DNA of 62,572 nucleotides from Selaginella moellendorffii (taxonomy: Eukaryota; Plantae; Lycopodiophyta), in the NCBI RefSeq assembly GCF_000143415.4, contig NW_003314459.1:9348-71919 (forward strand), given 5' to 3'. A program made the position numbers and the translations under genes. The first letter of the stretch is position 1, and each line of letters opens with the position of its first letter. Below the pieces are notes generated by a model. The model saw nothing but the letters and a program-made list of their open reading frames with translations, made no database searches and was not told the DNA's origin. Shown here piece after piece: positions 1-59,066 of the stretch.

Positions 1-922
1 TATATTATATTAAACCTTTCTATATACCATTCATGAATTTTCTGATATATTATAGTTCTAGCATAACCATTCATTTATCATCATAAAATTTCAGCATTCA
101 TAACAGTGCTATAAAGCCTTAATTATAAATATAAATACATGAATATAGGGAGATAATAATCTTATTTCAGATTTATAAAAACAACTACAGAAATAATGTT
201 TATGATATATAATAGAATACTTTCTATTTTAGATATTACTCTCAAAATGCATGAATATAAATATTAGGTAAAAAAGGAACATCAATGATAAATATGTAAA
301 ATATTATAATTTTATAAAAGAAAATATAACACATAAAGCTAACGTCTTTCACTTATTGTTATGCAATTCCAGAACTTTCAGTCTGAAATGATGAAAAGAG
401 AAACTCCATAACAATGTTTATATTTTTTAAATTTAAAAGATGTATGCACTTTAGGTGAGTTTTTAAATATATATTAAATATATTTTTAACATCATTATAA
501 TTGAGTGTACCTAAGTAACACATACTTTATTAAGAGGAGAAATTATATAGTTTAATAAATCATGAAATAATAAGATTTTTATCACTTATATAGAGATTTC
601 AAATAAAAGATAAAATTAGTTAATAAAAAATGACTCATCTGAGCATTGGATCCCACAGTGAGAAATTCCATTTATAGAATATCCAAGACTTCAGTCAACA
701 ATCAGAATTTTAAATATGATATAATGTACTGAGTTATATTTATTATGTTATGATGTTTGTTGGTAATGGAGTCAATTGTTGAAGATATTTTTAATATAAA
801 TATTATGTTATGTTTAACTATATATCTTATAATTATGATTATGTTAAAAATTACACTCTTTGAAATTATTAAAATATCAGAAATAAACACAATGCTCCCA
901 GCGTAGCTGGGACTTTTGCTAG
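1..922 (+). mobile_element. 3' end of a Helitron-like element (AT-rich subterminal module, hairpin, CTAG)
   Basis: Hairpin TCCCAGC-GTA-GCTGGGA at 896-912, then CTTTTG and CTAG at 919-922. The AT-rich module upstream recurs at ~30190-30640 and ~46600-47259. Confidence 0.85.
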
Positions 923-1124
923 TACTCCCTTATTTAAACGTGCTATTGGCATATGGCATCCGGCGTCTTTTATTCCATTTTTAGAATATTATTTATACAG
1001 TTCAAATTCAAAAACTTCAAATAGACGGCATAGATCAAGTGCCAAAGGGGTGGCAACGCTTCAATGTGATTTTAATGACGTTCCAAATCAAGGAAATTTT
1101 TAGGGCAGATTGTGAGCTGCAAGC

Positions 1125-1179
<55 letters not shown>

Positions 1180-3407
1180 ACTTGGCTGCAGGACTCTCCT
1201 TCCATGCTATAAGTTGGTATATGGAAGGTAAGCTTTTCTGGATTCCACTTCAGCCTCCATTGTTTGTTCTTGTGCGATGTCTTCAAATTCCAATGCCCTG
1301 GATTGAGCTGGCCATTGTGTACTATTCTTCTGTCAAAAGGAACATCCTAGAGAGGCGAGAACTGGCTGGTTTGCATGTGGTCAACAAGCTCAGCACTCCA
1401 TACCAGAGCACTGACGAGCATCCTGCAGAACCTTTTTATTTGCCAAGGACAGTGAGTTGCATATGCCAAGTTTGAAAAGAGCCAGGTGATACGTTCACCA
1501 TCAGCAGCTGATCAGGTTTAGGAGGTAAGTAACTCTCCTCAAGTGTGTTTGACAGGCTGTTTGTTTCCTTGGTCGTTTCAATAAAAAAAGAAAGTGGACT
1601 ATTGCAGGAAGAGGCTCTCCTTGGGTTCCATGAGAAAGCTCTGGAAATTAGCAGGTAACTCCTCAGGTTTTGTGTTCTTTCGGGTGATCTGATCTTGTCT
1701 CATGCCACTCAGGCCAGGAAGCACCCGGCACTGGCCGATGCAGTGGGTCAGCAATTAGAATTTATCTGCTTGACCCAGGGGGAAGGACTGGTAATTTTAT
1801 TTCATTTTGTATTTGTTCTTGCCTTGGTGAAAAGCTTAGTTTCAGTTGCTCAATCCTTGACGTGATTCCATCTGAATAGCATACCAATTTTCTTATGTGC
1901 CAGAACGTAGCTGGTTCAAACTGTTCTCAGCTGTGGTGAGTTGCTGATTCAATCTTTCAAAGTAACAGTAAAACCAAATGATGAACAGAATGTGGTAGAA
2001 GTTGCAAAATCCTGCAATCTCTTTAGGCGAGAGCTGGACGGAAATTGGGCTTGCTGGCCTTAGTGGCAGTGAAACCTTGGCGGCGCCAATGATAAAACTA
2101 CTGGACGAGGCCTTTTGTTGTCCTCCTCTTGTGAGTATGCCAGGCCAGCAAGGGAACGCTTGGATTCACTTGCAAACACAAGTACAGAACTCCAACATTC
2201 GTTCTTGCTTCCTCTTGGTATTGCTCTCATGTTTTCCATTGCTTTCACTAATGCTCTTTTTTATTAGTGTGGCTTTATAATGGAGACGGTCCTTCTCAGT
2301 CTGAATAACACCAATGATATTTGTCATTCATGAAGAAAGTAGCATTTATCTCGACAAACATCATTACTTTTGAGCTGAGTCCCAGTCCGAGTGAAGATGG
2401 CAGCGATGATCCAACAGCAATTCTATAATGCAAGCAGCCTGATCGAGGTGGGGCCTCTAGGATTGATGTTGGCATGGACACTTTTGCTGTGTCATCGAGC
2501 TCACCAGGTATGTGTGCCTTTACATTCTCAACTCCTTTCATTTGCTCACTTTGTGTATGTTTCAGAGAGAAAGATGACAAGTCATGTTTTTCTCGATCAA
2601 ATGAGTGAGGTAAGAGATGTCTCTTCCCTTTTGTGCCATTGTAAACTACACATCCAGTCTTGTGATTATTTTTACAAACTGCTGTGGCATTCAAGCTAAT
2701 GGCTCACAATCAATACAACTATTCTTTTTATTGTTATTGACTCTGATATCTTTGTGGCACTTTTCTTTCTCATTGATGTGGATCACTTACTGATGTTTGA
2801 TGTTTCTGTAGGAGAAAAGATGGATCGGAGAATGAAGATGTAAAAATGTGAAAATGAAGTAATCTCAGCACATAATAGTAAGGATTGCAGGTTTAATCAA
2901 CCTTAAACTCATGACACTATGTCCAGGTAATTTATGGTAAAGTAGAATATGTCGAATTCTAGAAAAAGTAGTTGTTCTTATTTGCAATGAATGAGCTTTT
3001 GGAGGTGCTTGTGTGTTTTACAGCCTGGTTTTCCTATTGCAGATCTCCCTTCTTATTCCCAGGAGTGGCAAAAAGGCTGGGATTTATTTATTTTGGTTCT
3101 TTTGATTGGAAACTCCTGAGATTCAGTGTTGAGCTCTAATAATGAAAGGCAGAGAATTTATGGTTGCCATATTCTTGCAGTGGGGATACAATCCTGAAAT
3201 TTTGTGTTTACAGTTTTGGAGCCGATCAAAATATCCGAAATTTCCCAACGAGGAGTGCACTGCCAATACAGCAGTGGTGCTCTCGAGTTATCGTCACTGG
3301 AGCCACTAATATGAACGTGACTGGCTGCTCAATTAATCAGACGCCATAGTTGAGTGCCAACGCTGTACCATTATGGGGTTCTTCCTCCTCTATCACTGGA
3401 AAGCAAC

Positions 3408-4410
3408 ATGGCAGTGACTGCTTTGCCGACATTCTCGAGATTTTTACACAAGTGGTACTATGAGCCGGTGCTAAAGCCGGGACAGCCTCCACTTCCACCG
3501 GGTCCGCTTGGATGCCCGTCTTTATCAACATGGCTGCTTTTCTCAGAGCCTTCAAGTCTGGATTACCATACTCTTTCATGGGTCACTTCTTGGTTTCAGG
3601 TATAATCGAGTGGGTTTTACAAGGCATTTCTGTTCTAGCAGCCCACCGTCCTGGTTGCCACAGGCATGCAAATTCGTGCTCTCCAAAGACAGCTTTGAGA
3701 CAGGATGGCCAAAGAGCGCTGTTGTGCTCATTGGACGAAATCTGTTTGCGAGATTAACTGAAGAGAGCTACTTGAAGCTCCAGAAGCTTACTGAGTCACT
3801 GTGAACAATCCCAAAGCTCTTAAGCAGTACGTGCCCCTACAACAGCATGCCTTGCAAGGTGGCCTACGGAGCATAAGATTGTTCTTCTTACCGAGATGAG
3901 AAGGGTAAGTGATGTTTACTTCCTGTCTGTCTTATTTTCTCGTTGATACTGGTTTTTTCTGATATGACAGTTCACGTATCTAACTGTCCTCTACATTTTA
4001 TATAGGAAAGACTCCAGTCTCGATGTGGATGAGATTTTCTCCTTGTACTACATTGTCAACCAAGGCATTCAGGCTTTCCCCATCAACTTCCCCAACACTG
4101 CCTACAACAAAGCCTTGAAGGTCCAAGCCATATGCATTGTCTTACATAGTTATGTGATGTTTTCCCATTCTCAGGCCAGGTGTAAGGTCATCAAGCTTAT
4201 CCAGGACCTGATCAACCAGCGAAGAGCTTCTAGAAAGACACAGGAAACAAGCATTCTTTTGTTGCTCATGGATGAGCTGGATGACAAAGGAGAGTCTCTG
4301 GAAGTGCTGAAATCATAGACATGCTCAACATGTACATAAACGCTGGTCACAACTCGATGGCTGATGGTTTTCTAAAGCAAAATCCTGATGTGCTCGAGAA
4401 AGTGAAGATA
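3408..4410 (+). pseudogene. CYP88A: Cytochrome P450 pseudogene fragment, CYP88A / ent-kaurenoic acid oxidase-like (N-terminus to I-helix)
   Basis: Pieces WYYEPVLKPGQPPLPPGPLG, NMAAFLRAFKSG, CKFVLSKDSFETGWPKSAVVLIG, QAFPINFPNTAYNKALK and DMLNMYINAGH match remembered KAO motifs (LPPGDLGWP..NMWSFLRAFKS; MYLNAGH). Frameshifts, stops and short introns; no heme-binding region. Confidence 0.8.
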
Positions 4411-4980
4411 AACATTTACAATTTCATACAAACTTTCCTTCATACAATCTTTCTTCTTTAGGTCACATCCAGACTATTCTGTAAAAGTTTCAAACTTCTG
4501 TAATTATAAAAGAAAAAGTATTCTACTGAATTGTACTTCATACAAGATGATATCCTATGTATTCTCATGCCTCCATTATTCTAATTCATCCCTGTCACTT
4601 CTGTATTTGGAAGGAAATGCTATTTATGAAAGCTCTGCATTTATGTTTACCCTTTGCTCCAATGGACCTAACGAAGACATGTTCAAGACAGATGCAAACT
4701 GGCAGGTATTCTTAAATAACCATAGAACTGCACATCATCTCTTTAAGGGAAATTTATAAGGTGCTTGTAAGGCTCTAAAGTGTTAACCTCCTCTGGATAT
4801 CTTTCAATAACAGAAAAAAACTTTTAAAACATGAATGGTACTTTTTCACTGCTTTATTGATGTTTTATGGTAGTCAAGTTACAACTTCTAGAATTCTACG
4901 AGCAGCATTTGAGGAATGTCTAGGGAATGAGAAACTGTAAGGTGTAGCATGATATTTTCTTGCTCTAATAAATATTTAAA

Positions 4981-5564
4981 TAGAAGCTGCCTGAGTTTGG
5001 ACTTTCTGGGAGGTCACCTAGCCTAGTACTATTCAAACCCAAGGACATTTAACCCTAAATATCCCAAGACCCTTAACCAATTAGAAAAGGGGGTGCACTT
5101 TTGTTCATGGGCCCTTTCCCTCTATATTTGAACTCTATGGATCGTTTCTCGAGTCGTTCTCTTCAGTTGTTTACAATCCACCATGCTTCCTTGCAAATTC
5201 ACGCCCTCATGAACGGAAGCTGAGAGCCACAGCTCTCCCAAGAGCCCTGCTCTCTTGACACCCTACCCCTCGAGTCGAGCCTAGCAAGAGCAAACTGGAC
5301 CAGCTAGATATCAATCAACTTGTGGTGTGATTCCCTTACCCAACCAACAGAGTCGGACCCGAGACCCCTCTGATACCAAATGTAAAGTCTTGAATTTGGA
5401 CTTCCCGAGAGGTCACCCAGCTCAGTACTATTCAAACCCAATGACGCTTAACCCCAAATATCCCAAGACCCTTAACCAATTGGAAAAGGATGTTCATGGG
5501 CCCTTTCCCTCTATATTTGAACCCTATGGATCGTTTCTCGAGTCGTTCTCTTCGGTTGTTTACA
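4981..5564 (-). mobile_element. Cassandra-type TRIM (short LTRs containing a 5S rRNA-like domain)
   Basis: Direct repeats at ~4981-5175 and 5381-5564; the latter has TGTAAA...TTTACA termini. Minus-strand PBS TGGTATCAGAG (5368-5378, tRNA-iMet type) lies 2 nt from that LTR. Purine-rich tract on the minus strand at 5176-5190. Non-coding interior of 205 bp. The left boundary is degraded and no TSD was found. Confidence 0.85.
5398..5453 (-). promoter_or_regulatory. 5S rRNA-derived pol III internal promoter domain in the TRIM LTR (second copy at 4999-5053)
   Basis: Reverse complement GGTTAAGCGTCATTGGGTTTGAATAGTACTGAGCTGGGTGACCTCTCGGGAAGTCC aligns by eye with plant 5S rRNA GTTAAGCGTGCTTGGGCGAGAGTAGTACTAGGATGGGTGACCTCCTGGGAAGTCC (A-box to C-box). 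Confidence 0.85.
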
Positions 5565-8500
5565 CCTTTGTGGCTTTGCTTAACTACAAACAAATGCTTA
5601 CAAGGTCAAAATGACACAAGGAGATATTCATAAAGATGTATTGTATTTTGCTATTTAGAGAAATCTTTGGAGATGTTTATATTCCAAACATGCAATTCTT
5701 AAGAACATCTCAAAAATATCATTATTTTTGTAGAAAACTCTCCTCTTGAAGACTTAAGAAAATTATTCTCACTCATAAAAATCCTCAACAAATATCACAC
5801 TTAAAATTAATATAAATCAAAGCTATATATGTGAATTGTAAGTTTTTTAAAGAAATTTATTTAAGAAATACTTTAAAGTATATATTATATGTTAATAATT
5901 ATATTATGTTATACTTTAAAAAGTAAAAATGTCATTATATTATTCTTGTATATTGTAATATGTTAGATCTAAGTTTATATATTTATTTTTATGTTCTTTA
6001 TAATGAACATACCAACAATAAAATTTAAGAGAATGAAGAATTTGAAACTTTATTCACAAATGATAATGTTGAAACAACAATACATATTATTTTAAAATAA
6101 AATAAAATTAAAATAAACTTTGTGAGTGCTTGGAATATGGAAAGGGAATACAGAAATGTGCATATGAATTAGCCCAAAAGTGAGTGGTCCAGATTGAAAC
6201 CAATCCGACATCTACCAAAATCCCACTACGCTAATATTAGTATACGGCATCATAGCCATACACTTGGGCCCTCACAATTTCAATTTTAATATCTTTTGAG
6301 AATATTATTATATTATATTAAATATAGTACTAAAAAAATATAATTATATAAATATGAATGTGCTAAATAGAAGTTTATAATAAAATTATTAATATTTCTT
6401 TTAATCTAAGTTTGTTTATAATAGTGTTCTCCTTTAGATAATTGTTGAATAGTAAGCATTTTTAAATAATCTAATAGTAATTTTATATTTAAATTAAACT
6501 TTCCAAGATTTTTAGCTATATATGATTTGAAATCCTTTGGTAAGACACAATCTTGCAGAATATTTTTAAAATTTTCAAAGTTCCTTAGAAATATTAAAAT
6601 TATAACTTCTAGCATGATATTACCTAAATATAATCCTAATGAACTGTAGTTTATAATTTTTAACTTTAAGGGTTACAATCTAGATATTTAATTTTAAAGT
6701 TGCTCTACTAATTTTTAACCTAAATCACTTTTCATGAGAATTTCATATAGACCAGTCTTTTTAATATATAAAATTTTATTTCTATTAAATTTCTTTCTTC
6801 TTATTCTAAGTTTTTCTTTCTCAAATATTTTTTCTCTTCATCATTTAATTTTTGTAGTAGTTATCTTATATATTATAAATTATAAAATGTGTTACATACA
6901 CTCGATCTATTAATAACTTATATTCTGGTTAGAAAGGTTTTACACATGTATTAATATTTTTTAAAAAATATCTAATATAAATATTTAATAAAATAGATTT
7001 TCTATCTTTACTAGCTGAGTTGTATTTTTCTCACAAATGTGACATATAATTTTACTCTATTTCGAAAACATTAACGTTTTTTATAAAATACTTAATTACC
7101 ATTTGAACTAACACGATATTTTCCTTATGCCTATGTATGGGTTGATATAATACAAAATTAAAACAAAAAATAAAGCTCATGTAAAGTTTTAAGACAAACC
7201 TGTACTAATGCTTTATAATAAAATTATGCATTCATGTCTCATTAATAACATGGTATTTAATATGGTATAAGCTATCTCATACATATTGAAAGATCAAATC
7301 CATTTCTTGATTATATCTTAGTTATATGAAGATTTAAAATAAAATAAAACAATAGTTATTAGCTGAAAGAATAACATAAAATTATAAATTATAACATTAC
7401 ACTAATGAGTTTGATAAAAATTATATTATATTAAAATATTCATAAGAACATATTCTACTATTATTGTGGATTTGTAAAGAAAGAAGATATATTTAAGAGT
7501 AAATTAAACTATTTTTATATATACTGAATCAATAAAAAATCAAACCAAAATCAAATAGTCTTATCTGAAAATAAATATTTAAAAAAATAAAAAATAATTA
7601 TGAGTTTAGGTGAATTTTCAGTAAGAGTATATTCAAAGAATAAAAAACAATATTTTATTATCTTCTGCATTATATTATTTAGCTTTATTTATCTAATAGA
7701 AATTTTACAAGTGATTTAAAAGTTAAATTAATCAGCTTGAAACTTACAATTTTATATTATGGATTACAACTATAAATTAATCTACACGATTATAATAATT
7801 TAACTTATGGATAGATTTAATTATGGTTTAATGTTTCATGAAAATAAATTAGTCACTTTTAATAAAAGAACATATATAAAAGAAAAACCCAAAATATGAA
7901 TAAAAATGAATAACATATGTTTCAAATTATTAGCTTGGATGGATCATTAGTAAGTTGTGGTAAAAATTATATGCTCTTTTGAAGAAGTCTCATTTTTGAA
8001 GTGTATTCTTGATGTTCCTACTGTTTGACCTCGGAAACAAAAGAAATCCACAAGAAAGTCCCATAGGATTTACTAGGTTAACATATTTGCATGATAGGGT
8101 TTTGAAGAAGATATCATCTAGGAAGTCATGTCACTAACTTGAGTGATGGCTAAATAAGAAATCAAAACTCAAACACTTACAGTTTTTTTTTTCTCAAGGA
8201 TATTTTTCTCATATGAAGTTCCCTTACTTTACTTTAATATAGCCCCTATTTCAAAATATATATTCTTGGTAACAGTTTTTCAATTTGGCTTTACTTGCTG
8301 GAATTAAGCTTAATAGTTGATAAACTACTTTGGAAAGGTATTCTTTTTTACTAAAGTGAACCTATGATAGAGGGTAAACATATCTCACAAGTGTGCTGCT
8401 AATATTATGTATTAATTGGAAGAAGGAATCATTGGCACAAGAGGGCATTCTTTTAGATTTGCAACTATAAAGAGTAAAAGGGTGTAATTGATGGGACAAG

Positions 8501-8989
8501 TGTTACTTCTTAGAGAGGAGTGAAACAAATATTCAGTAACAAATAATGACTTCCTAATGCACTATGTGCTCATCACATTTTATCCTATAACAACAGGTGT
8601 TTTATATAAGTTCAAGTACCAACTTAGCATAGTTGCTAGCACTTTTTGAAGTCAAAGGAATCCCTCCCTTTTCTAATAGCATTTAAAAAACAGAATGGCA
8701 CATGATAGCTGTAGCAATGAAACTCACAACTTCATAAACAATTCAAAAATATGGTATAGGGGATTGTCTTGATATATAAAACTTAGTCAACATAGTTTCC
8801 CATGATAAATTATTTCAATAGCTACAACAAATTAACACACCATTAGTTGTCATTGAATAAATATATGTCATTATTCTTGCAGACTATCAAGGAGTTAAAT
8901 AGATTGAATGCACTATTTGCATTAAATAAGGATGTCCACTGTGTTTAGCTTATATATGAATGCCCTTGAGAGTTTAATGTGGCATTAAA

Positions 8990-10475
8990 ACTTTTTGGAG
9001 ATCCATATAACTGACCACTTCATTCTCACAATAAAATCTGTGGAAGGTAGTCTGCATTGTAGTTAGATCTATTAGGGTCAAAATTTTCCATGAACCTGTC
9101 ATTCCTTGTGATCATCAAGGTATGCAGCACACAGCAAGACATGATGTTGTTCGCAAGGATGCCTAGATGTCCTCTAAATCCCTTCTAACCAAGCAATTTC
9201 CATTGCCTCTTTAAAATTCCAAAAGATTGCTTGACAACAATCCTCATAGAAGAATGAAAAAAGTTGTATTGCTCTTTGCCATGAAACTTGTTTGGATATA
9301 AGACCAAAACCAGTAAAGCACACTCTTATCCTCTGTCAGCAATGATATACAATGGAATGTCCCCAAACTCTGTATGGTACACTGGACCACATAAACACTT
9401 CTTCTCTATCTATGCCTTCTTCAAACCACTAGAATTCCAAACTTGTCTATCTGGAACACTACCTACTATCCTTATTGTTATGTAAAGGAATGAAGTCTTA
9501 CTGTCTACCACAACTTGAACTACCATTGAGTAGTACTTTTTTCCCTAGCATACCAATCTATTGCATCTTCTGATCCTCGGAGCTCGATTGCCATATGAGT
9601 GCAATCCATTGCACCACAACAATTTGGGAATCCATGCGATCTCTAAAAGCATGCTATAACTTCATTTATTCCCTCCTCATCTGCCAATGGATCATTAGTC
9701 CTTCTTGCTCAAACAATGAATACCTGAATCAGCATAGACAAGCTTGAGTGCATGAAGCCACTCTAAATGCATCACCAATTATTTTCCATGTGTCCCCGAA
9801 TGCCAAGCATTTCAAAGCAATATGCTTTGAAATAGCTAAATGCTACTTTGGTATTTTTGCCAAACCTGGAGGAGGCCTCCTAGCCAATTTTCGAGCAAGC
9901 TCGTCACAAAGAAAAGTGAATGTAGATACTAAAAAACTTCTCTGAATCTTTGTGGATTTATATAGAGAACCTAAAACTCTGTTTGATACCACTAGTGGAG
10001 ACTTCTTGGCTTGATGTAATCCACACTGATCAATAGCCCTAGGAGCTCCTTTTTAGTGATCACTTTTTCAATAAATGAAGTTGCAGTAGGACATGGCATA
10101 GAAAGCACTATAGCAATTGCTTCCTCCACCATTCGAATGAACAAAAGCTTTCTTGAAACTGGAACTAAGATCATGTCCTCCTCTAGAAAGAACAACTCTA
10201 CCAAATTTAAGTACCTCATCACAATTTCTACAACATGGGAAATGATTGCCAAAGAAGAATTGCCAAGCTATGGCATGCTATACACTCAATTTAGGGTAAA
10301 AAAAAATGGCACCCTAATCCATTATGATGTGGAAAAAAAGAAGCAGCCTTATGTGGCATATAAAAAAGAGGGTTACATGTAATGTAACCATTAAAAAACA
10401 AAGGAGGGGAAAGTTTTTTTTGGAGGGGAGGGGTGAGGAGAAATTTCCAGGTGGGTGGAGCATGGAACCCCACCC
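8990..10475 (-). mobile_element. Degenerate PIF/Harbinger transposon (DDE transposase pseudogene ~9070-9960, one putative TIR)
   Basis: Minus-strand fragments TFTFLCDEL, CLAFGDTWKIIGDAF, HGFPNCCGAMDCTH (9596-9636), LYIIADRG* and SCCVLHTL are Harbinger transposase motifs. Minus-strand TTA-GGGTGGGGTTCCATGCTC at 10478-10458 looks like TSD plus TIR. Other end not found. Confidence 0.8.
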
Positions 10476-10855
10476 TAAGGGAACTACTCCTTATTCACAT
10501 GGGTATAAATTAAAAATGCCTTGAGATGGAAAATGCTTTGTAGTCTATTGCTCAACCCCAATGAGCTTATAGAAGGTGATGAACCTGATCTAGAATGCCC
10601 AAATAATATACCAAATTGAGGAATATGATTAAGCCACCTTTTCATGTGTTGAATAATTCTTTTAAGATTTGAGTCCAAGCTTGTATTATTCTATTCCAGT
10701 AAACCATTTAAGAAATAGTGTTTGGTTGCAATCACTAAGTAAAAACTAAATAAACCAAGTGCTTGTTACATATTGAACCTAAGCAAGTTTTAATAAATTA
10801 TTCTCTTTTTAGAATTAGCATCTAACTATCCCAGCGGAGCTGGGTTCCCTGCTAG

Positions 10856-13800
10856 TCATACTCATATATTTAAATGAAAGAGCCTGTATAATAATAGCAT
10901 ATACTGGCGACACTTATTCTGGGCATATGCCAAAATCTAACGGCTGACATTAAACAATGGAGAGTCGTGACTTTTGGGATCATAAAAAATTTCAAATAGC
11001 TTTTAGGGCAGGGAGGAAAGCGACGAGCGTTGGTAGCAGGAAGGCTCTCTTTCTCTCTCTCCTTTGGAATCATGTGCCCTGGATTGATTCAGGGCCCGAC
11101 CTTGTTTATTTTTTATCCTGGTATAAGCAATTCTCTTTTTCTGGGCTGGTATTTTATCTTTCCTTATGTATCGAGCCCAGCAGTGAAAGCTTGGCATGTT
11201 TTCGGCCATAAGGTACGCATTTTTTACTCAGCATCCCGGTTTGGTTTTGTGATATGTTGTGCACAAGCTCTGTTGATTGTTGAGATCTCTTCCCAGAAAG
11301 TATTGCAGCATTGATAAAACGAATCCCTCTTTTCATGTTCTTGAGTTGATCATATTTTCTCCCAGCAGCATTGCAGCTTGTCCAGCAGATGGCTGCCAGT
11401 AGTCACCACAATTTGCAGGGATTTGCTCTTGAGCCCCAGAGGATCCTGGTGGCTACGCCCTTACTCTTACCATTGCCCTGGCGCAGATCCATCCAATCCA
11501 TCAGCATCCGCTGCAGTACCATGCTCAGGGCATCTTGTCAAACACCTCAAATGGGGTCAGTGCTTGCCATAGCCAAGAGCACGACATTTTAAGGCACAAT
11601 GTCCAAGGAAGAAAACTTGAGCAGTTCTACGAATTGCAGACTGGAGTTGTGGACTGGTTTTTTCATGTAGTCCCTCGTGGTTTCTTCTTCTGACTCTTGG
11701 TAACATAATGTGTTCTTCTTGGCGATCTTAGTATTCTTTTCCAGAGAACTTGTAGTCCTGGAGCTTTCAAGACTGTTGATTCAACAAAGGAGGAAGTATG
11801 TGAAGATTGCTATTTGGATGGAATTGAGAGCGATGGCACTCCCAATTGATGTGAATGTGAGAGATGAGTCTTTGTGTGCATGTATTCCTAATTTGATAAT
11901 TCTTTCAGATTGTTTACTTTGATGCATTGAGGCTGTAATCAACTGGTTTTTCTCACGCTTGAGTCGTCAATTGTACTCCTACAGTTGGGACACAATGGAC
12001 GATTACACTTTAATTGTACTTCTGTGACACAATGGTGATTACACTGCAGACCAGGTTAGCCACCTCTTCTTTTCTTATGATTTTGTCTTTCCTAAACTGG
12101 ATAAACGTTTTTTATTTTGCTTTTAGATGCTTCCACATTGTCAAAAATGATGTGATTGGAGGTACTGAGACTCACAAATAATGCCAAAGAAAATAGTTGT
12201 GGATTCGATAAATTATTGTTTGCATACAAACCTGATTTTTGCTTGCAAACAAACGTACCAGATCACAAAGCGAGGTCCAGACCTGGTCCTGAAAATCCGA
12301 GGACAGCTTTGGAGCGTACTTCATCACGTGTGGAGCTGTATCCGGCTAAGCAAAGCATTGAGCCTCCATGCCAACAGCAATCAAAACTGTCACATGGAAC
12401 ATAAAGTGATGTGAGATTTCTACAAGACAAACTTAAAATTTATTCCATATCATGGAAACTTATCACCTGAACCATTTGTGTTTGGGCATACACAAAAACG
12501 CAAAAAAAAAATTACATGGAATGAATGAAGCTATTAAAATAAATGCTGAGACACCAACCAGAAACTTTGTCGGCCTTCCTCAACCTCACACTCAAATAAT
12601 ACACTTAAATTATAAAAGAAGAATTCAAGAAGCTACAAGTTCATCGTTTGTAAGCAACATTCTTACGTGCATAAAAGAAAATCACCATCTTTAGAAGCTG
12701 AAATGCGTTATGTGCACAAGAATCATTACATATAGCCTGTTGGTCAGAGTTTACTTCTTTTCAGCTTTTCAGTCACTTCTGTACCAGTGACCACATTTTC
12801 AATTATCACCACTTAGGAACTTCTCCTACATCTCATGTCCAGAAACTTAGCCATAGTCTCTGAAACTGGTCATCATGTATAATAGACAGTGACAGTGGCC
12901 AAGGCAGTGCTTGCCTTCCATTTGAAGTCCCAGAATCATCAGAGAGCTTCAAGACTGCTATGAATCCCAGAGGAGATGCAGCCTCCAAAGGAAAACATCT
13001 GGAGCCCAAGTTGGGCTGGATGAAAATATAACTTGAGAAACTTGTAGATAATAGCTTCATGATGATGGGACATGCATAACACTCTACATAAGAAATGGAA
13101 AATTAAGCTCTAATCACCATTGAGGGCTTTGCCTGCTGAAAGAATGTCAATTTAACTATTTTATGTTGAACTCATGCTACTGATTCTTGGGTATGGGCAT
13201 CAAGAAGAATGCAAGAGAGACATTGAATAGAGGTAAGTGGTGCTAGACCCTGGTCATCCCATCACCATCGCCACCCATTGCACACTTCATGGATCAATCC
13301 ATTTACTATTAACCTCAAAGAAAAACTGCCTACCTGATCATTGCCTTAGCTTTCTTAATGTTGATTGCCAAAGAACTGTTATAGCAAGAGGAAGGTTTGT
13401 CATGCCTCTTGAATTCAGGGCAAATAGGTCCCTTAACCATGGCAACAACAGCACTAATTCCCAGATTAGATGATGATGTTACATACCAATACCTCTTGCA
13501 ATTCCCACTACCAGCCCATGGTAAATTGAATGTGTTTGCAAAAGAACAGGTCAGGAGTACTGGGAAGATGAAGGCATTGAAGAAAAAAAGCCAGCATGCA
13601 GGCAAATGATGTCGCTTACAGGTATCAATATACTGCCGTGTTAGCAGTGTTTACATTTATCCTTTCATCTTGATTACAGAGTGGAACCTGATATCTATTC
13701 TTTTTGGAGAAAGTCAGTGAATATCTTGGGATACAGGTAAACATAGTGCTTTGTAAGTTTTGCTATCAAAGCTAGAGGAAGTTCTTCGGTTGGGGTATTG

Positions 13801-17618: not shown

Positions 17619-17649
<31 letters not shown>

Positions 17650-23089: not shown

Positions 23090-23140
<51 letters not shown>

Positions 23141-30836: not shown

Positions 30837-30872
<36 letters not shown>

Positions 30873-39970: not shown

Positions 39971-40005
<35 letters not shown>

Positions 40006-41882: not shown

Positions 41883-41885
<3 letters not shown>

Positions 41886-41968
<83 letters not shown>
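41886..41968. repeat. (CT)n microsatellite followed by (GT)n; longest of the per-unit tracts
   Basis: 83-nt CT tract, versus 29 nt (39974-40002) at the same position in D2. Confidence 0.95.
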
Positions 41969-41971
<3 letters not shown>

Positions 41972-47259: not shown

Positions 47260-47465
47260 TCATCATCATACTCATATATTTAAACGAAAGAGCCCGTATA
47301 ATAATAGCATATACTGGGGACACTTATTCTGGGCATATGCCAAAATCTAACGGCTGAGATTAGACAATGTAAAGTCGTGACTTTTGGGATCATAAAAATT
47401 TTCAATTGTCTTTTAGGGTGCGTGACCACAAGGAGAGAGCATCGATCATCGCTTGTGGGAAGGTA

Positions 47466-47496
<31 letters not shown>

Positions 47497-50400
47497 CCTC
47501 TGTGAGTGTGTGTGTGTGTTTGATGGAACGATTTAGAAGGCTACAGTCAGCTGTACATGATGCCACTGGTTGGTTCATTCTCGAGTTCAAAAGCTCACGC
47601 ACCGGAAAATGACAATCATTTAACCAACGCCGAAGCGTTCTTCAACAGGAGAATTATCCAGTTCGTGAAGAAACGAGTCGCACTTATGGAAAAAGTACTA
47701 ACGCAGAATATCATCTGGTAAAAGAGTCTCGACCCCCCTATTGTCGTCCCTGCGATTCTAGCTTGAGATGTTCCAGGATGACCAAGATATTACGGCCAAT
47801 CGCAGCAACGGTGGCATCAAGCCTGGCGAGGGACCAAAAACCTCCTACCAAAAGCCGCAACCCGCATTTGTTCCTTATCCAACACCTTTGAGTGAGTTCC
47901 TTCGATTTAGACACTAGAAAAAACTCTAATGCGTTCGTTTTTGGACAGCTCCGGAAGAAGTCCTGGGAACAGCACTGGATAACGATCCTAAGCGGCTGAA
48001 AGCTCCAGCCTATTACAACGAGGTTGTGTTTGTTTCTCCATTTGCAAAGGTTTGAGAGGCTCACGGCTTTCTCTGTGTCGCCATAGTTGTGCTCGATGAC
48101 CAGTGAGAACAGGATCGACGCCTTCCAGACTTATGCGGGGAACAAATCCACCAGCATCCGCCTGCGCAGGTGCATTTGGCAGATCGACGTGCTCTGCCCG
48201 GAAATGCGACGAGGATTGGGAGTGAAAGGCGATGGAGCTACGACAGGGACGACGTCTCGGACAATGAGGGGATTCACGTTGTCATCGACGACTAGAATCA
48301 AGGTTCTTCACTCTCTTGCTTGTCGCTATTCTTCTTTCGGGTCTCTCAAGTCCCTGTTTGTTCCAGGTTCTCAAGGCTGGAACCACGACTAGAATCAAGG
48401 TTTTTCACTCTCTTGCTCTTCGCTATTCTCTTTCGAGGCTTAAAGTTCCTGTTTGTTCCAGGTCCTTGAGGCTGGAACCAAGAGAAAAAATAGAAATTTT
48501 TGTCCACGGTTTGCTTCCTTGTTCTTCAGTTTTGCGTTTTTAAAGCATTGAGAGGGATTTCTATTTTGCAGCGCTATAAACCCTGTAGTCTCTACATGGA
48601 TAGTCATACGGGACAGCCATACATGGTGCTCTTCAGTTTATGACAAGTTCTCTTGAGGAAATGTTGGCAGTCAAGCACAAAAAAACTGGCTTGAAGGACA
48701 TGATGGAATACTCTCTTATAACAGTTATGGCTGTTCATATCTGAGGGTTTCATGTCTGACTCTCTCTCGTGTCACTTTGCAGCATTAGGAACGAAACAAG
48801 GAGAGCGAGCTCCTTGATTCTTCACTGTTGATAAGTTTCTTTCTCGCATTTTTTGCAGTTGTCACTGTTTCTGAGTCTCCACAATGAATGCTTTGGAAAT
48901 GGGTATGTATGTGATTTACAGTCTTTGCAATGTAAGTTGAATGTGTTTGCAAAAGAACAGGTCATGAGTACTGGGAAGATGAAGGCATTGAAGAAAAAAA
49001 GCCAGCATGCAGGCAAATGATGAACAAACATATTTCACCCATATGATCCTGTCACTTACAGGTATCAATATACTGCTGTGTTAGCAGTGTTTACATTTAT
49101 CCTTTCGTCTTGATTACAGAGTGGAACCTCTGATATCTATTCCTTTTGGAGAAAGTCAGTGAATATCTTGGGATACAGGTAAACATAGTGCTTTGTAAGT
49201 TTTGCTATCAAAGCTAGAGGAAGTTCTTCGGTTGGGGTATGGTTTTGTCACAGCTTTTTACGGCAGTATGGTGACAGAAAGGCTATCTAGAAGTCCCAAT
49301 GGTAGAGTCGACTTAATGCTACAGGTAAGTCTTGCTCTTTGCTATCACATCATTCTCGTGTGGATCCAGGATACAAAATTTAAGCACCACTACATATCGC
49401 TATCTGATCAACGACAGCAGTGGCTGGAGAGAGAGAAAGGAGATTTGGAGTCTGAATCACAGCAGTAGCAGCAGCAGCATCACCAGTGAGAAGATCTCAA
49501 GGCCATGAGAATCCTCCACCAGTTTGGGATCAGTCACATGTACGTAGCAGCCAGGTGAGAAGGGCAGTGAGAGGGACAGGGACGAAGATCTCACGAGGGA
49601 CAGGGATGAAGATCTTACAGGGTCCGTCATCACCCGATTGATGAGGTCCTGGTTTGCTCTATCACTTTGGAGCCATCTCTGAATGGCAAGGTGAGCTTCA
49701 ACGTGGTGGCAGTGATCCAGAGCAGCAGCTCTAGAAGTGGTAATGATGACCATGCGTTTCTCTACAAGGACATGGTGCTGTACAAATCCAATTACTATTA
49801 GCATCACATGTCTGAGGACAAATTAAGTGAAGTGGTGCCAGATTCAATTGTATTTGTGTTGTAATACTACATTATATATAAGGTGTCTCCTACCCTTGAC
49901 TGGCTACAAAAAATAGCAAATGTCTTTCCCTCTTTGCTCTAAGTGAGCACTCTGACCAACACACATAACAGTAACATATGTGTCGAGAAGGCCAAGTACA
50001 AGCCCACTGCTCAGTTCAAGCTCAAAGTCACCTTGCTTCTCTACATTTATATCAACAGCTCCTCTACATAATCAGGCTGTGTACTCCACATGAACCATGG
50101 AGCCTAGAGTTGGCCTGTCGCAAGATGTCTCTTCTCCTCTGGTATTCCTGTTGAAGCACTAAGCNNNNNNNNNNNNNNNNNNNNNNNNNNNNNNNNNNNN
50201 NNNNNNNNNNNNNNNNNNNNNNNNNNNNNNNNNNNNNNNNNNNNNNNNNNNNNNNNNNNNNNNNNNNNNNNNNNNNNNNNNNNNNNNNNNNNNNNNNNNN
50301 NNNNNNNNNNNNNNNNNNNTTAGTGCTACTGATATCAGCACATGGAACTGCACACTCACTAAAGAGAATCCATTCACTGCGAAGAGGAACCCACCAAAAA

Positions 50401-53400
50401 AAATCCCTCCCGTGCTGTTTAGAACTCTCATAGCAGGCCGGAAGATAGGGCTTCACGCATTCTTCCAGGGCTTGAGCATGGAGTTGTGACGGTAGCATTC
50501 TCTGTGGTAGTGCCATTGCTAGGGATTTCAATATAACATGTTCTTGGGGCCTACATCGAGAAGCTTTATGGAACCACTCCACTGGAATCATCTCCACATG
50601 GTGGGGTAGCCTCGAGCAGTTTGTTATGATGATCCCTATTTGTCTCTGCCTTTCCTGCACATGATGTGGTGGAGAACACAAGGACAACAACAACATTGGC
50701 TTCGCATAATGAGCCTCTGGGAAAGTCCTGCAAACAGTTCCATACGGTTCTCAACTATTTGTGGCGTATGGATCACAGATGTGGTGACTCTTGTACTCAG
50801 TGTGCTGCCTAACTCTTCACTTATTTCCTCTGGGGATGATCAGAAAGTAATAACTTGAACAATGTTTTCTCTGCTTCTAAATATCCAGGCACTTCCACTC
50901 TTGTATGATCCTGATGATAATGAGAATGTGGATAATGTGGACTTATCACACGAGCACGTACTGTGGCAGACTTTCTCAAGAGAACTAAACTAATACAAGA
51001 TGCAGATAGGTTCATCAAGAGAATGTCATTCACTTCTTAGTGACTGCTTAGTGCCTGTAAAGTTCACGAGGACTTGGAGAGATGATCAAAAGGTGGCGAT
51101 GGATATGCTTAAGTGTGTGAAGCGTGAGCATATGAGTTCTGTGCTTTGTAGGAGCTTCATTATTGCCGAGACTTGAATTCAAACTATCTCTTTATTTTCT
51201 ATCTAAGTCACGTGTATATGCACTGTTAGCACAACTATTATATAGAAACTGAATAAGAGTTTTGATGGATGGCTCAAAAGAAGTTAGGTTGATTCAAAAA
51301 ATACCTCTCCAAATTTTTTAAGAGATGGAGAATGATAACTCCACAATGGTGAGATGTGATGGTAAGAATTAAGGACTAATGCTTAACATAAACATGAAGT
51401 TTACCTATGTATGTATTAAGTTTCTAAGCATAAAAAGTGGCAAGAGGAAGATGGATAAAGACAATAAATTCTACACAACCAACCATGCAAACAAACTGTC
51501 AAGTAGGCAACAATCAAAAGTAAAAGCAAAATAAGTGTTAGATAAAATGCAAAACATCATGGATGAGTTGACAAGAACTTGTCAAGTGAAATGCTGATGA
51601 AGCACAAGCAAATGTTCTCAAAAAATCACAAATCATATCACTGATTTATTATTTCAATACTTATTTACCATACTTATTTCTGTTACTTGAGTAGTATCTA
51701 AAATATATAACTGTGAATAAACCAATATTATGATAAACTTGTCCATGTATTTTAAAATAATAACATCTACTGTAACCTCTTCAATGTTTGCACCTATTGA
51801 TGCAAATGCTAATGCACTATTATAATTTAGTTTTAATACACATATAACTTTTTTGACTGCAGGTATTATATTAGAAAATAAATTTTAGTTACTTATAAAA
51901 ATATATAAATGCGAAGTATAAAAGTGTGGATGTACTCTGAACACTTCAACATCATAAATTATACAATCTGCTATTCTTTTCGTGAGAATCCTTTTTTACT
52001 TGAACTCTGAAACAAACAGTGAATCTAACTGAAAGAAACACAAGGTTGTTTCTTGTATTTTTTCTCTCAACGCATTATCATGTTCTTCTCCTTTGCATTT
52101 TTTTTCAATGGAAAGCAGACGTTGTGATGACAAATATCTTTGGAAAATTGTTTCCAATGCAGAAGCTCTACATGCGGGACTGGCCATTTGAACTCTACAT
52201 TGATATGTGGGCTAAGATATATCTTCTTTATCTAGCCAGGCATTAGGGTAATTCAGGCCAGGGTAGTGAGCTGATTAGCTTTTTTGAAGCTTGATAGTGA
52301 TGAGGATCTGACAGAGATTCAAGATGTAATGCTGCCACAATGTGCCAACTTGCCACGGAGAAAAAAAAGTGATGTATGCTCATATCCAAGTTATTAGGGT
52401 GACACCATCCAGCCAGCACTATTGCAAGCTAGCATTAGACAATAAGAGTGAGTTATATCTATTTCTTGTTGATCATGTAGATGGAATAGGAAATCTATTT
52501 GTATTCCACACTTTATGACAATGCATGCATGGGCTTCTCGTTACACAAAATAAACTATAAATTATAAGTTAAGATATTAATAACTTATTCTATAATATTT
52601 TAATATCATAAAAATCATGATACTAAAAAAACAAAAAATTATATATACATTATAATATAGCATGTTATAATATAACAATAATTTATATATTAAGCATAAA
52701 TATAATACAATTCAGTAGAATACTTTTTTCTTTTATAATTACAGAAGTTTGAAACTTTTACAGAATAGTCTGGATGTAGCCTAAAGAAGAAAGATTGTAT
52801 GAAGGAAAGTTTGTATGAAATTGTAAATGTTTATCTTCACTTTCTCGAGCACATCAGGATTTTGCTTTAGGAAACCATCAGCCATCGAGTTGTGACCAGG
52901 GTTTATGTACATGTTGAGCATGTCTATGATTTCAGCACTTCCAGAAACTCTCCTTTGTCATCCAGCTCATCCATGAGCAACAAAAGAATGCTTGTTTCTT
53001 GTGGCTTTCTAGAAGCTCTTCGCTGGTTGATCAGGTCCTGGATAAACTTGATGACCTTTCACCTGGCCTGAGAATGGGAAAACATCACAAAACTATGTAA
53101 GACAATGCATATGGCTTTTACCTTCAAGGCTTAGTTGTAGGCAGTGTTGGGGAAGTTGACGGGGAAAGCCTGAATGCCTTGGTTGACAATGTAGTACAAG
53201 GAGAAAATCTCATCCACATCGAGACTGGAGTCTTTCCTATATAAAATGTAGAGGACAGTTAGATACGTGAACTGTCATATCAGAAAAAACCAGTATCAAC
53301 GAGAAAATAAGACAGAGAGGAAGTAAACATCACTTACCCTTCTCATCTCGGTAAGAAGAACAATCTTATGCTCCATAGGCCACCTTGCAAGGCATGCTGT

Positions 53401-53723
53401 TGTAGGGGCACATACTGCTTAAGAGCTTTGGGATTGTTCACAGTGACTCAGTAAGCTTCTGGAGCTTCAAGTAGCTCTCTTCAGTTAATCTTGCAAACAG
53501 ATTTCGTTCAATGAGCACAACAGATATTTATTACATTTATATTACATTTATTGGGATCATACAATGTAAAAGGGACTTTCAATATAAATATTATATTATG
53601 NNNNNNNNNNNNNNNNNNNNNNNNNNNNNNNNNNNNNNNNNNNNNNNNNNNNNNNNNNNNNNNNNNNNNNNNNNNNNNNNNNNNNNNNNNNNNNNNNNNN
53701 NNNNNNNNNNNNNNNTTTGCTAG
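47260..53723 (+). mobile_element. Chimeric Helitron-like unit E (C/D-type 5' part, B-type body, inverted P450 insert)
   Basis: Starts (TCA)3-TACTCATATATT. ~48045-48480 matches C/D modules and ~48886-52700 matches the B body. TTTGCTAG ends at 53723, right after a gap. Confidence 0.8.
52706..53523 (-). pseudogene. Inverted copy of the CYP88-like fragment
   Basis: Reverse complement of ~3719-4535 and ~56846-57663. Confidence 0.9.
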
Positions 53724-53941
53724 TACTCCCTTATTTAAACGTGCTATTGGCATATGGCATCCGGCGTCTTTTATTCCATTTTTAGAATATTATTTATGAA
53801 TATGCTTATAATCTAACGGTTCAAATTCAAAAACTTCAAATAGACGGCATAGATCAAGTGCCAAAGGGGTGGCAACGCTTCAATGTGATTTTAATGACGT
53901 TCCAAATCAAGGAAATTTTTAGGGCAGATTGTGAGCTGCAA

Positions 53942-54003
<62 letters not shown>

Positions 54004-54010
54004 TCTGTGT

Positions 54011-54572
54011 CACAACTTGGCTGCGGGACTCTCCTTCCATGCTATAAGTTGGTATATGGAAGGTAAGCTTTTCTGGATTCCACTTCAGCCTCCATTGTTT
54101 GTTCTTGTAGATGCAAGAATTGGCTGCGATGTCTTCAAATTCCAATGCCCTGGATTGAGCTGGCCATTGCGTACTATTCTTCTGTCAAAAGGCTGGTTTG
54201 CATGTGGTCAACAAGCTCAGCGCTCCATACCAGAGCACTGACGAGCATCCTGCAGAACCTTTTTATTTGCCAAGGATCTCTCTCTCTCTCTCTGTCTGTG
54301 TCTGTGTCACAACTTGGCTGCGGGACTCTCCTTCCATGCTATAAGTTGGTATATGGAAGGTAAGCTTTTCTGGATTCCACTTCAGCCTCCATTGTTTGTT
54401 CTTGTAGATGCAAGAATTGGCTGCGATGTCTTCAAATTCCAATGCCCTGGATTGAGCTGGCCATTGCGTACTATTCTTCTGTCAAAAGGCTGGTTTGCAT
54501 GTGGTCAACAAGCTCAGCGCTCCATACCAGAGCACTGACGAGCATCCTGCAGAACCTTTTTATTTGCCAAGG
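54011..54572 (+). repeat. 297-bp tandem duplication inside A2
   Basis: CACAACTTGGCTGCGGG...TTGCCAAGGA starts at 54011 and again at 54308, each preceded by a CT/GT microsatellite. Confidence 0.9.
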
Positions 54573-56528
54573 ACAGTGAGTTGCATATGCCAAGATTGAA
54601 AAGAGCCAGGTGATACGTTCACCATCAGCAGCTGATCAGGTTTAGGAGGTAAGTAACTCTCCTCAAGTGTGTTTGACAGGCTGTTTGTTTCCTTGGTCAT
54701 TTCAATAAAAAAAGAAAGTGGACAATTGCGGGAAGAGGCTCTCCTTGGGTTCCATGAGAAAGCTCTGGAAATTAGCAGGTAACTCCTCAGGTTTTGTGTT
54801 CTTTCGGGTGATCTGATCTTGTGTCATGCGACTCAGGCCAGGAAGCACCCGGCACTGGCCAATGCAGTGGGTCAGCAATTAGAATTTATCTGCTTGACCC
54901 AGGGGGAAGGACTGGTAATTTTATTTCATTTTTTATTTGTTCTTGCCTTGGTGAAAAGCTTAGTTTCAGTTGCTCAATCCTTGACGTGATTCCATCTGAA
55001 TAGCATACCAATTTTCTTATGTGCCAGAACGTAGCTGGTTCAAACTGTTCTCAGCTGTGGTGAGTTGCTGATTCAATCTTTCAAAGTAACAGTAAAACCA
55101 TATGATGAACAGAATGTGGTAGAAGTTGCAAAATCCTGCAATCTCTTTAGGCGAGAGCTGGACGGAAATTGGGCTTGCTGGCCTTGGTGGCAGAGAAACC
55201 TTGGCGGCGCCAATGATAAAACTACTGGACGAGGCCTTTTGTTGTCCTCCTCTTGTGAGTATGCCAGGCCAGCAAGGGAACGCTTGGATTCACTTGCAAA
55301 CACAAGTACAGAACTCCAACATTCGTTCTTGCTTCCTCTTGGTATTGCTCTCATGTTTTCCATTGCTTTCACTTATGCTCTTTTTTATTAGTGTGGCTTT
55401 ATAATGGAGACGGTCCTTCTCAGTCTGAATAACACCAATGATATTTGTCATTCATGAAGAAAGTAGCATTTATCTCGACAAACATCGTTACTTTTGAGCT
55501 GAGTCCCAGTCCGAGTGAAGATGGCGATGATCCAGCAGCAATTCTATAATGCAAGCAGCCTGATCGAGGTGGGGCCTCTAGGATTGATGTTGGCATGGAC
55601 ACTTTTTCTGTGTCACCGAGCTCACCAGGTAGGTGTGCCTTTACATTCTCAACTCCTTTCATTTGCTCACTTTGTGTATGTTTCAGAGAGAAAGATGACA
55701 AGTCATGTTTTTCTCGATCAAATGAGTGAGGTAAGAGAGGTCTCTTCCCTTTTGTGCCATTGTAAACTACACATCCAGTCTTGTGATTATTTTTACAAAC
55801 TGCTGTGGCATTCAAGCTAATGGCTCACAATCAATACAACCATTCTTTTTATTGTTATTGACTCTGATATGTTTGTGGCACTTTTCTTTCTCATTGATGT
55901 GGATCACTTACTGATGTTTGATGTTTCTGTAGGAGAAAAGATGGATCGGAAAATGAAGATGTAAAAATGTGAAAATGAAGTAATCTCAGCACATAATAGT
56001 GAGGATTGCAGGTTTAATCAACCTTAAACTCATGACACTGTGTCCAGGTAATTTATGGAAAAGTAGAATATGTCAAATTCTAGAAAAAGTAGTTGTTCTT
56101 ATTTCCAATGAATGAGCTTTTGGAGGTGCTTGTGTGTTTTACAGCCTGGTTTTCCTATTGCAGGTCTCCCTTCTTATTCCCAGGAGTGGCAGAAGGGCTG
56201 GGATTTATTTATTTTGGTTCTTTTGATTGGAAACTACTGAGATTCAGTGTTGAGCTCTAATAATGAAAGGCAGAGAATTTATGGTTGCCATATTATTGCA
56301 GTGGGGATACAATCCTGAAATTTTGTGTTTACAGTTTTGGAGCCGATCAAAATATCCGAAATTTCCCAACGAGGAGTGCACTGCCAATACAGCAGTGGTG
56401 CTCTCGAGTTATCGTCACTGGAGCCACTAATATGAACGTGACTGGCTGCTCAATTAATCAGACGCCATAGTTGAGTGCCAACACTGTACCATTATGGGGT
56501 TCTTCCTCCTCTATCACTGGAAAGCAAC

Positions 56529-57535
56529 ATGGCAGTGACTGCTTTGCCGACATTCTCGAGATTTTTACACAAGTGGTACTATGAGCCGGTGCTAAAGCCA
56601 GGACAGCCTCCACTTCCACCGGGTCCGCTTGGATGGCCCGTCTTTATCAACATGGCTGCTTTTCTCAGAGCCTTCAAGTCTGGATTACCATACTCTTTCA
56701 TGGGTCACTTCTTGGTTTCAGGTATAATCGAGTGGGTTTTACAAGGCATTTCTGTTCTAGCAGCCCACCGTCCTGGTTGCCACACCAGAGGCATGCAAAT
56801 TCGTGCTCTCCAAAGACAGCTTTGAGACAGGATGGCCAAAGAGCGCTGTTGTGCTCATTGGACGAAATCTGTTTGCGAGATTAACTGAAGAGAGCTACTT
56901 GAAGCTCCAGAAGCTTACTGAGTCACTGTGAACAATCCCAAAGCTCTTAAGCAGTACGTGCCCCTACAACAGCATGCCTTGCAAGGTGGCCTACGGAGCA
57001 TAAGATTGTTCTTCTTACCGAGATGAGAAGGGTAAGTGATGTTTACTTCCTCTCTGTCTTATTTTCTCGTTGATACTGGTTTTTTCTGATATGACAGTTC
57101 ACGTATCTAACTGTCCTCTACATTTTATATAGGAAAGACTCCAGTCTCGATGTGGATGACATTTTCTCCTTGTACTACATTGTCAACCAAGGCATTCAGG
57201 CTTTCCCCATCAACTTCCCCAACACTGCCTATAACAAAGCCTTGAAGGTAAAAGCCATATGCATTGTCTTACATAGTTTTGTGATGTTTTCCCATTCTCA
57301 GGCCAGGTGAAAGGTCATCAAGCTTATCCAGGACCTGATCAACCAGCAAAGAGCTTCTAGAAAGACACAGGAAACAAGCATTCTTTTGTTGCTCATGGAT
57401 GAGCTGGATGACAAAGGAGAGTCTCTGGAAGCGCTGAAATAATAGATATGCTCAACATGTACATAAACGCTGGTCACAACTCGATGGCTGATGGTTTCCT
57501 AAAGCAAAATCCTGATGTGCTCGAGAAACTGAAGA
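56529..57535 (+). pseudogene. CYP88A: CYP88A/KAO-like P450 pseudogene fragment, second direct copy
   Basis: WYYEPVLKPGQPPLPPGPLGWPVFINMAAFLRAFKSG in one frame, with stops downstream. Confidence 0.8.
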
Positions 57536-59066
57536 TAAACATTTACAATTTCATACAAACTTTCCTTCATACAATCTTTCTTCTTTAGGCCACATCCAGA
57601 CTATTCTGTAAAAGTTTCAAACTTCTGTAATTATAAAAGAAAAAAGTATTCTACTGAATTGTACCTCATACAAGATGATATCCTATGTATTCTCATGCCT
57701 CCATTATTCTAATTCACCCCTGTCACTTCTGTATTTGGAAGGAAATGCTATTTATGAAAACTTTGCATTTATGTTTTCCAATGGACCTAACAAAGACATG
57801 TTCAAGACAGATGCAAACTGGCAGGTATTCTTAAAGAACCATAGAACTGCACATCATCTCTTTAAGGGAAAGTTATGAGGTGCTTGTAAGGCTCTAAAGT
57901 GTTAACCTCCTCTGGATATCTTTCAATAACAGAAAAAAACTTTTAAAACATGAACGGTACTTTTTCGCTGCTTCTTTCATGTTTTGTGGTAGTCAAGTTA
58001 CAACTTCTGGAATTCTACGAGCAGCATCTGAATAGTAAGCATTTTTTAATAATCTAATAGTAATTTTATTTAAATTATACTTTTTGAGATTTTTAGCTAT
58101 ATATGATTTTAAATCCTTCAGTAAGAGACAATTTTGCAGAATTTTTTTCACATTTTTAAAGTTCCTTAGAAATTTTGAAATTATAACTTCTAGCATGATA
58201 TTACCTAAATATAATCCTAATGAACTGTAGTTTATAATTTTCAAATTTAAGGGTTACCATCTAGATATTTAATTTTAGAGTTTCTCTACTAATTTTTAAC
58301 CTAAATCACTTTTCATGAGAATTTCATATAGACCAGTCTTTTTAATATTTAAAATTTTATTTCTATTAAATTTCTTTCTTCTTATTCTAAGTTTTTCTTT
58401 CTCAAATATTTTTCTCTTCATTATTTAATTTTTGTAGTAGTTATCTTATATATTATAACTTACAAAATGTATTACATACTCTTGATCTATTAGTAACTAA
58501 TATTCTGGTTAGAAAGGTTTTACACATGTATTAATATTTTTTATAAAATATCTAATATAAATATTTAATAAAATAAATTTTCTATCTTTACTGGCTGAGT
58601 TGTATTTTTCTCACAAATGTGATTTATAATTTTACTCTATTTTAAAACCATTAACTTTTTTTATGAAATACTTAATTTACCATTTGAACTAACACGATAT
58701 TTTCCTTATGCTTAGATATGGATTGATATAATACAAAATTGAAACAAAAAATAAAGCTCATTTAAAGTTTTAAGACAAACCTGTACTAATGCTTTATAAT
58801 AAAATTATGCATTCATGTCTCATTAATAACATGGTATCTAATATGGCATAAGCTATCTCATACATATTGAAAGATCAAATCCATTTTTTGATTATATCCC
58901 AGTTTTATGAAGATTTAAAATAAAATAAAACAATAGTTATTAGCTGAAATAATAACATAAAGTTATAAATTATAACATTACACTAATGAGTTTGATAAAA
59001 ATTATATTATATTAAAAATATTCATAAGAATGTATTCTACTATTATTGTGGATTTGTAAAGAAAGA

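Follow-up and report, generated by a model that had tools for sequence, protein, structure and literature searches.

Head-to-tail stacks of different Helitrons in Selaginella moellendorffii, probably built by serial insertion at resident 5' tips

Helitrons are thought to choose AT target sites with little further specificity, and where they stand in tandem arrays, rolling-circle concatemers are the usual explanation. A stretch of 62,572 nucleotides from the lycophyte Selaginella moellendorffii (NCBI RefSeq assembly GCF_000143415.4, contig NW_003314459.1, positions 9,348 to 71,919 of the forward strand; hereafter the window) raises the question of how different Helitron elements could come to stand in a row, all in one orientation, with the 3' end (tail) of one abutting the 5' end (head) of the next. 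The likely answer is that the stack was made by independent serial insertions at A|T sites located at, or 3 nt inside, the 5' tip of a resident element. Furthermore, head-to-tail stacking appears to be routine in this genome.

The tetranucleotide CTAG is found at 919, 10852, 17423, 22896, 30637, 47256, and 53720, and each copy is directly followed by T and a conserved head, with zero spacer. All seven positions at which a preliminary description of this DNA had seen a 3' end abutting a co-oriented head were thereby borne out. Intact heads start with TCATACTC, which carries the 5' TC terminus. Written as (TCA)n-TACTC, the heads across the seven junctions contain n = 0, 1, 0, 2, 4, 3, and 0 units of TCA before TACTC. 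Those with n = 0 start with TAC, which may be read as TCA lost through an insertion. A GC hairpin of 6–7 bp with a 3-nt loop is located 7 nt upstream of CTAG at six of the seven junctions, the hairpin at 53720 being inside an assembly gap. The hairpin-CTAG tail motif has six matches in the window versus none in 100 shuffles, and a metagenome scan with this motif gave no match. A motif scan of the window placed all tails (6/6) and all heads (9/9) on the plus strand and none on the minus strand. No target-site duplication is visible at the junctions, as judged from the window sequence.

The identity of these elements as Helitrons is supported by their TC...CTAG ends, the hairpin, the A/T flanks of free ends, a RepHel remnant, and an RPA70-like gene; the ends, hairpin, and A/T flanks match the published definition (PMC5876387, PMC4778049). 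The preceding base is A at all three free genomic heads, and the following base is T at all 15 CTAG ends examined. The combination of a hairpin with CTRR, named earlier as the Helitron 3' signature, also held, as the window has seven CTAG ends and a hairpin in all six that are readable. The elements are best explained as non-autonomous Helitrons of the canonical Helitron1 type (HLE1). On the minus strand at 16226..16501, antisense to element A1, there is a remnant of the N-terminal region of a Helitron transposase, with further copies at 28042-28317 and 51657-51884. This antisense remnant of the A copies resembles the stretch that precedes PF14214 in Helitron transposases; it gave 53 matches at E<=0.001, with PF14214 downstream of the match in three of the ten scanned, and also an Atlas lead. 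No intact transposase was found within the window.

Self-comparison of the window divides the train into about 10 units, in the order E, B1, A1, A2, A3, D', C, D, A4, and B2, instead of the roughly 12 proposed before, and this gives nine junctions, seven of them visible. All of the units lie on the plus strand. Element E (1..922) is present by its 3' part only, with a hairpin at 897-911 and CTAG at 919-922; its head lies outside the window, and it is kin to positions 8761-9588 of comparison locus L007. Element B1 (923..10855) has a type B head with n = 0 and a type 2 tail, and its 3' part shows a 94% match to L003 16817-19290. It is followed by A1 (10856..17426; type A head, n = 1), A2 (17427..22899; n = 0, with two internal gaps, both colinear), and A3 (22900..29184; n = 2), whose 3' end is concealed by the gap 29185-29284. 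The short unit D' (29285..30640), a kelch piece plus a tail, has its head concealed by the same gap. Element C (30641..37940) has n = 4 and kelch and RPA70-like cargo, and the gap 37941-38202 conceals its 3' end. Both gaps had been suspected earlier of hiding junctions, and both are kept in the count of nine; the copy that bridges 29185 does hold a junction. Element D (38203..47259), with a fragment of pyruvate dehydrogenase E1 type, is followed by A4 (47260..53723; n = 3), a chimera of a C/D-like 5' part and an A-type body whose hairpin is concealed by the gap 53601-53715. The last unit, B2 (53724..59066; n = 0), is truncated by a Ty3-type long terminal repeat (LTR) retrotransposon lying outside the train at 59067..62572 on the plus strand, with an LTR at about 59067-59484, a primer-binding-like site at 59486, and gag at 61770-62570. 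Position 59066, previously taken as the terminus, is therefore ruled out as an element end, and the train may extend past the window.

Local duplications also shape this stretch. The positions 39776 and 41688, formerly listed as element junctions without CTAG, are ruled out as such, being boundaries of a local tandem unit of 1,912 bp that occurs in three copies (0-2 mismatches) and forms the first part of D. In this repeat (39776, 41688, 43656), an A|T site of the element interior is fused to the head's inner A|T site (3 nt in); it may have originated either as a transposase-made join of two A|T sites or as a 2-nt microhomology duplication. Positions 29078-29184 are identical to 30151-30257, and 29285-30150 differs from 30706-31547 by four mismatches; judged by these matches, D' probably arose when 1,397 bp spanning a junction were duplicated in tandem. 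The copy numbers of the 1,912-bp unit and of D' could be assembly effects. Additionally, B2 contains a 297-bp tandem duplication (53980-54573) beginning in a CT microsatellite after the head. A piece of element B of 818 bp is inverted within A4 near its 3' end, with 98% identity among 3719-4535, 52706-53523, and 56846-57663 and no obvious terminal repeats.

The kinship of the neighbours bears directly on how the train arose. Divergence among the four A copies is 1.3-2.9%; A1 groups with A3, and there are no informative sites dividing A1+A2 from A3+A4. Neighbouring A copies are thus not each other's closest relatives, which excludes simple tandem duplication as their source, and the register of the joints varies. 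The preliminary description had noted that neighbours are different elements in the same orientation and had judged a single-template rolling-circle concatemer inadequate. Both points stand: such a concatemer is excluded by the different elements, the non-sister A neighbours, and the varying joint register.

Ends at other places in the genome were compared in seven loci (L001-L007) from GCA_000143415.2, which were chosen by cargo and not by ends. Half of their eight tails abut a head (twice in L003, once each in L006 and L007), and the other four (L001, L002, L004, L005) are unjoined and are all followed by T, never by TCA. The rough probability of four joined tails in eight by chance is 1e-7 or less under generous assumptions (up to 20,000 heads, and an assumed genome size), although the ends are not fully independent. 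The three genomic heads without a preceding tail all follow A; their TCA counts are 3, 2 (one mismatch), and 1. Heads of type B have n = 0 and 0 in the window versus 1, 2 (one mismatch), and 1 in L003, L006, and L007; apart from those at the D duplication, all heads with n = 0 come after CTAG. The joints pair three tail types with four head types in several different ways. The idea that the termini are always linked inside one larger repeat, named beforehand as the outcome that would count against free elements, is rejected by the unjoined ends. Further variants of the ends were seen. There are two more head types, at L006 16329 and L007 9588: one starts with TCCTTC, is in the n = 0 register, and has a TC of its own, and the other starts with TCAAAC and has no inner A|T site. 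A recurrent tail variant (L003 581-606 on the minus strand; loose read ends at 22893) has a hairpin and then AATCACTAA-T, with no CTAG, and in reads a second hairpin-like motif seems to come next. At L002 11790-11997, a head with n = 3 begins some 20 nt past a tRNA-Ile(AAT) gene and contains a tail of C type in the opposite orientation.

The preferred explanation starts from the shared head TCATACTC, which offers two A|T sites, one at the boundary between host A and element T and the other at TCA|T, 3 nt inside. Insertion at the boundary would give CTAG|TCATAC, with n = 1. Insertion at the inner site would leave the resident as CTAG|TAC (n = 0) and its TCA before the newcomer (n = 2), and repeated inner-site insertions would raise n to 3 or 4. 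RepHel supplied in trans may bind its own 5' end and take a nearby A|T as target, and some stubs would probably travel along when an element is copied from the outermost TC. Binding and cutting within the terminal 40 nt are known from Helraiser (PMC4778049). The junction sequences, the co-orientation, the unjoined termini elsewhere, and the non-sister neighbours are direct observations; from them we infer the order of the insertion events and the attraction of the transposase to its own 5' end. The inner-site model predicts that free heads have n of at least 1 and that free tails lack a following TCA, and this held in 3/3 and 4/4 cases, numbers that are too low for statistical significance. 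Of the two mechanisms suggested earlier, insertion at a resident terminus is favoured, narrowed to A|T sites of the 5' tip, whereas serial joining of circles is less likely because joining itself does not make TCA stubs on free heads. A bolder form of the explanation, in which the clan has a built-in preference for its own 5' origin, the polarised arrays grow one element at a time, and TCA stubs are a record of single insertion events, is conceivable but rather doubtful.

Several points weigh against serial insertion at the 5' tip. The difference in n = 0 between joined and free heads is not significant (Fisher P=0.51), and the samples are small and not independent. A simulated stub ledger predicted n = 0, 1, 2, 3, and 4 at 50%, 18%, 20%, 9%, and 2.5% of junctions; the 11 observed junctions, with counts of 4, 4, 1, 1, and 1, fit it loosely. 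The probability of a sum of at least 10 was 0.14 only for trains of at least 15 members, and 0 for exactly 10. The ledger is also in excess, as A4 and B2 hold three stubs for two elements; the surplus requires either that the train has more members, located beyond the LTR or since lost, or that stubs are inherited, as has been proposed in Fusarium (PMC5148889). Heads carrying stubs and remainders with n = 0 both occur, but their counts are unbalanced in the window, and the first head of the train lies outside it. Moreover, the number of TCA units could be altered by replication slippage. The tail in L002 is found on the opposite strand of another head, about 90 nt into it, so that the tip is not the target in every case. 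The data examined contained no allele with an empty site, no long read, and no autonomous element with matching ends.

Two other processes could yield polarised joints without repeated targeting of a resident tip. Heterologous concatemers might form before integration, the 3' end of a strand or circle being joined to the enzyme-bound 5' end of another element in a variable TCA register and the product integrating as a block. That Helitrons form tandem arrays, and circles joined head to tail, is established (PMC5876387), and such a process accounts for the co-orientation and the zero spacers; the D duplication, in which an A|T of the interior meets the inner site of the head, suggests that this site can be a donor end. 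However, it offers no source for the extra TCA on free heads (n = 2, 3), a permuted circle predicts free n = 0 heads (0/3) and free CTAG-TCA tails (0/4), and many different templates must be active at once, so that this origin is unlikely. It is similarly improbable that rare joints arose without strong targeting and were amplified later through composite Helitrons (3' end bypass), local or segmental duplication, and TCA slippage. The local duplications of 1,397, 1,912, and 297 bp, one of which crosses a junction, are in keeping with such a history, as are mosaic elements (A4, and recombinant sites among the A copies) and the recurrence of the joint type of 919 at 53720 and in sequencing run X1. 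Yet the several pairings of three tail types with four head types and the non-sister neighbours speak against it, and the tails at the repeated joint type come from different elements, E and A4.

The long train might also be largely an assembly artefact, with repeats and two haplotypes scaffolded together. The window has 10 assembly gaps, and the earlier term gap-free applies to the visible junctions only, not to the whole stretch. Near-identical duplications adjoin gaps, and no aligned contig crosses the stretch. Paralogs bridge six of the ten gaps colinearly, with implied lengths of 247, 55, 65, 619, 390, and 155 nt. The gap at 53601 is consistent with an absent subterminal piece of the 3' end, that at 29185 is bridged by the duplicate copy 30257-30706 (448 nt), and that at 32432 by no paralog; the gap at 37941 needs about 460 nt, at odds with its estimate of 262. 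Nevertheless, six junctions lie well inside contigs, three within the first gap-free contig of 20,126 bp with at least 900 nt on each side and three with more than 1,200 nt of contig on both sides; at 53720 just 4 nt precede CTAG. Contigs from four public sequencing runs were additionally aligned to window 22300-23088. Run X1 contains a tail joined to a B-type head without TCA (75+112 nt) and a third tail type joined to an A-type head (65+92 nt), and run X4 has two contigs without the 6 nt of TCA. Run X15, which bears the label of another organism, has a head with n = 2 after unrelated DNA whose last base is A. Two more run contigs begin at 22902, which would imply A and then one TCA. The run contigs confirm the junction types, not the order of elements at the window locus. 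With independent runs X1 and X4 bridging such joints, and with TCA registers too varied for an assembler product, mis-assembly of the junctions themselves is unlikely; copy number and order could be affected, the junctions not, and an artefactual train is very improbable.

Among the contents of the stacked elements, captured host gene fragments were confirmed for two genes. A kelch-repeat gene fragment with introns (31275..32075, plus strand; Pfam kelch) has 54-53% identity to angiosperm proteins P0023 and P0026, and a dehydrogenase E1 fragment (44518..45361, minus strand; PF00676) is split over several frames. The RPA70-like gene (36089..37509, plus strand; PF16900, PF08646) has a frameshift near 37030 and is multi-copy in the genome, and its open reading frame at 36089 reaches up to 100% identity to Selaginella moellendorffii proteins. 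RPA-like genes are known Helitron accessories. The identifiable cargo is fragmentary or frameshifted; hence the cassette-like array described earlier is unsupported as anything with a function, and a functional gene cassette is rejected. A P450-like look of 3354-3754 and 56475-56822 was not confirmed by Pfam, PDB, Atlas, or homolog searches. In the relatives of C, pieces of a MORC-family gene lie upstream of the RPA70-like gene (L001 5206-6932, L004 4694-6474); they are outside the part of L001 and L004 common to element C and are not present in C. Element B1 carries an insert at 4992-5564, resembling a terminal-repeat retrotransposon in miniature, with two direct repeats of about 180 nt (86%), which is absent from B2. 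One of the repeats has a weak 5S rRNA match (33.5 bits; gathering score 38), as in Cassandra elements. The Ty3-type retrotransposon has a 265-aa open reading frame of unknown family (60275-61072) upstream of gag.

For maize and Fusarium the basic event has been described before; the novelty in Selaginella lies in its frequency and in the 3-nt footprint. About half of the sampled ends lie on the 5' tip of another element, so that target choice can be tested by counting, and the stub number would predict the site used and which neighbour came earlier. Stacking may also be a simple way in which Helitrons become chimeric and rich in cargo and, within a compact genome, come to cluster in safe havens. 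A built-in preference for its own 5' origin, if true, would amount to programmed self-targeting by a eukaryotic HUH transposase. A literature search, with most subscription journals outside its scope, turned up no paper describing TCA stubs or long stacks of mixed elements in Selaginella.

Known systems resemble the Selaginella train in part. Polarised head-to-tail arrays of mixed elements, each added at the previous 5' end, are formed by HeT-A, TART, and TAHRE at Drosophila telomeres (mentioned in PMC11934779); these are retrotransposons at chromosome ends with a host function, and no such role or location is shown in Selaginella. Plant and bat rolling-circle tandem Helitron arrays are also head-to-tail and in the same orientation, but, as far as they are cited in PMC5876387 and PMC6591975, they repeat one template, whereas the Selaginella neighbours differ in ends and cargo and are non-sister. 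In Fusarium, multiple 5' termini of FoHeli, up to five per copy, are ascribed to self-insertion, and insertion in a resident 5' end likewise creates a duplicated 5' stub, which the newcomer can take along when it moves (PMC5148889; PMC13342296). FoHeli elements are non-canonical, have stubs of 31-85 nt, and are not described as long whole-element stacks, whereas the Selaginella elements have canonical ends and 3-nt stubs. In the maize r1 region, a heterologous head-to-tail Helitron pair was attributed to consecutive insertions (Du et al. 2008, PMC2267711). There, too, CTAG is directly followed by the next 5' end, the elements and their cargo differ, and one proposed site is an A|T formed by host A and the resident 5' T (PMC2267711). 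Maize shows one such pair, whereas in Selaginella about 10 elements follow one another, half of the ends sampled at other loci are joined as well, and an additional site 3 nt within the head would leave TCA stubs.

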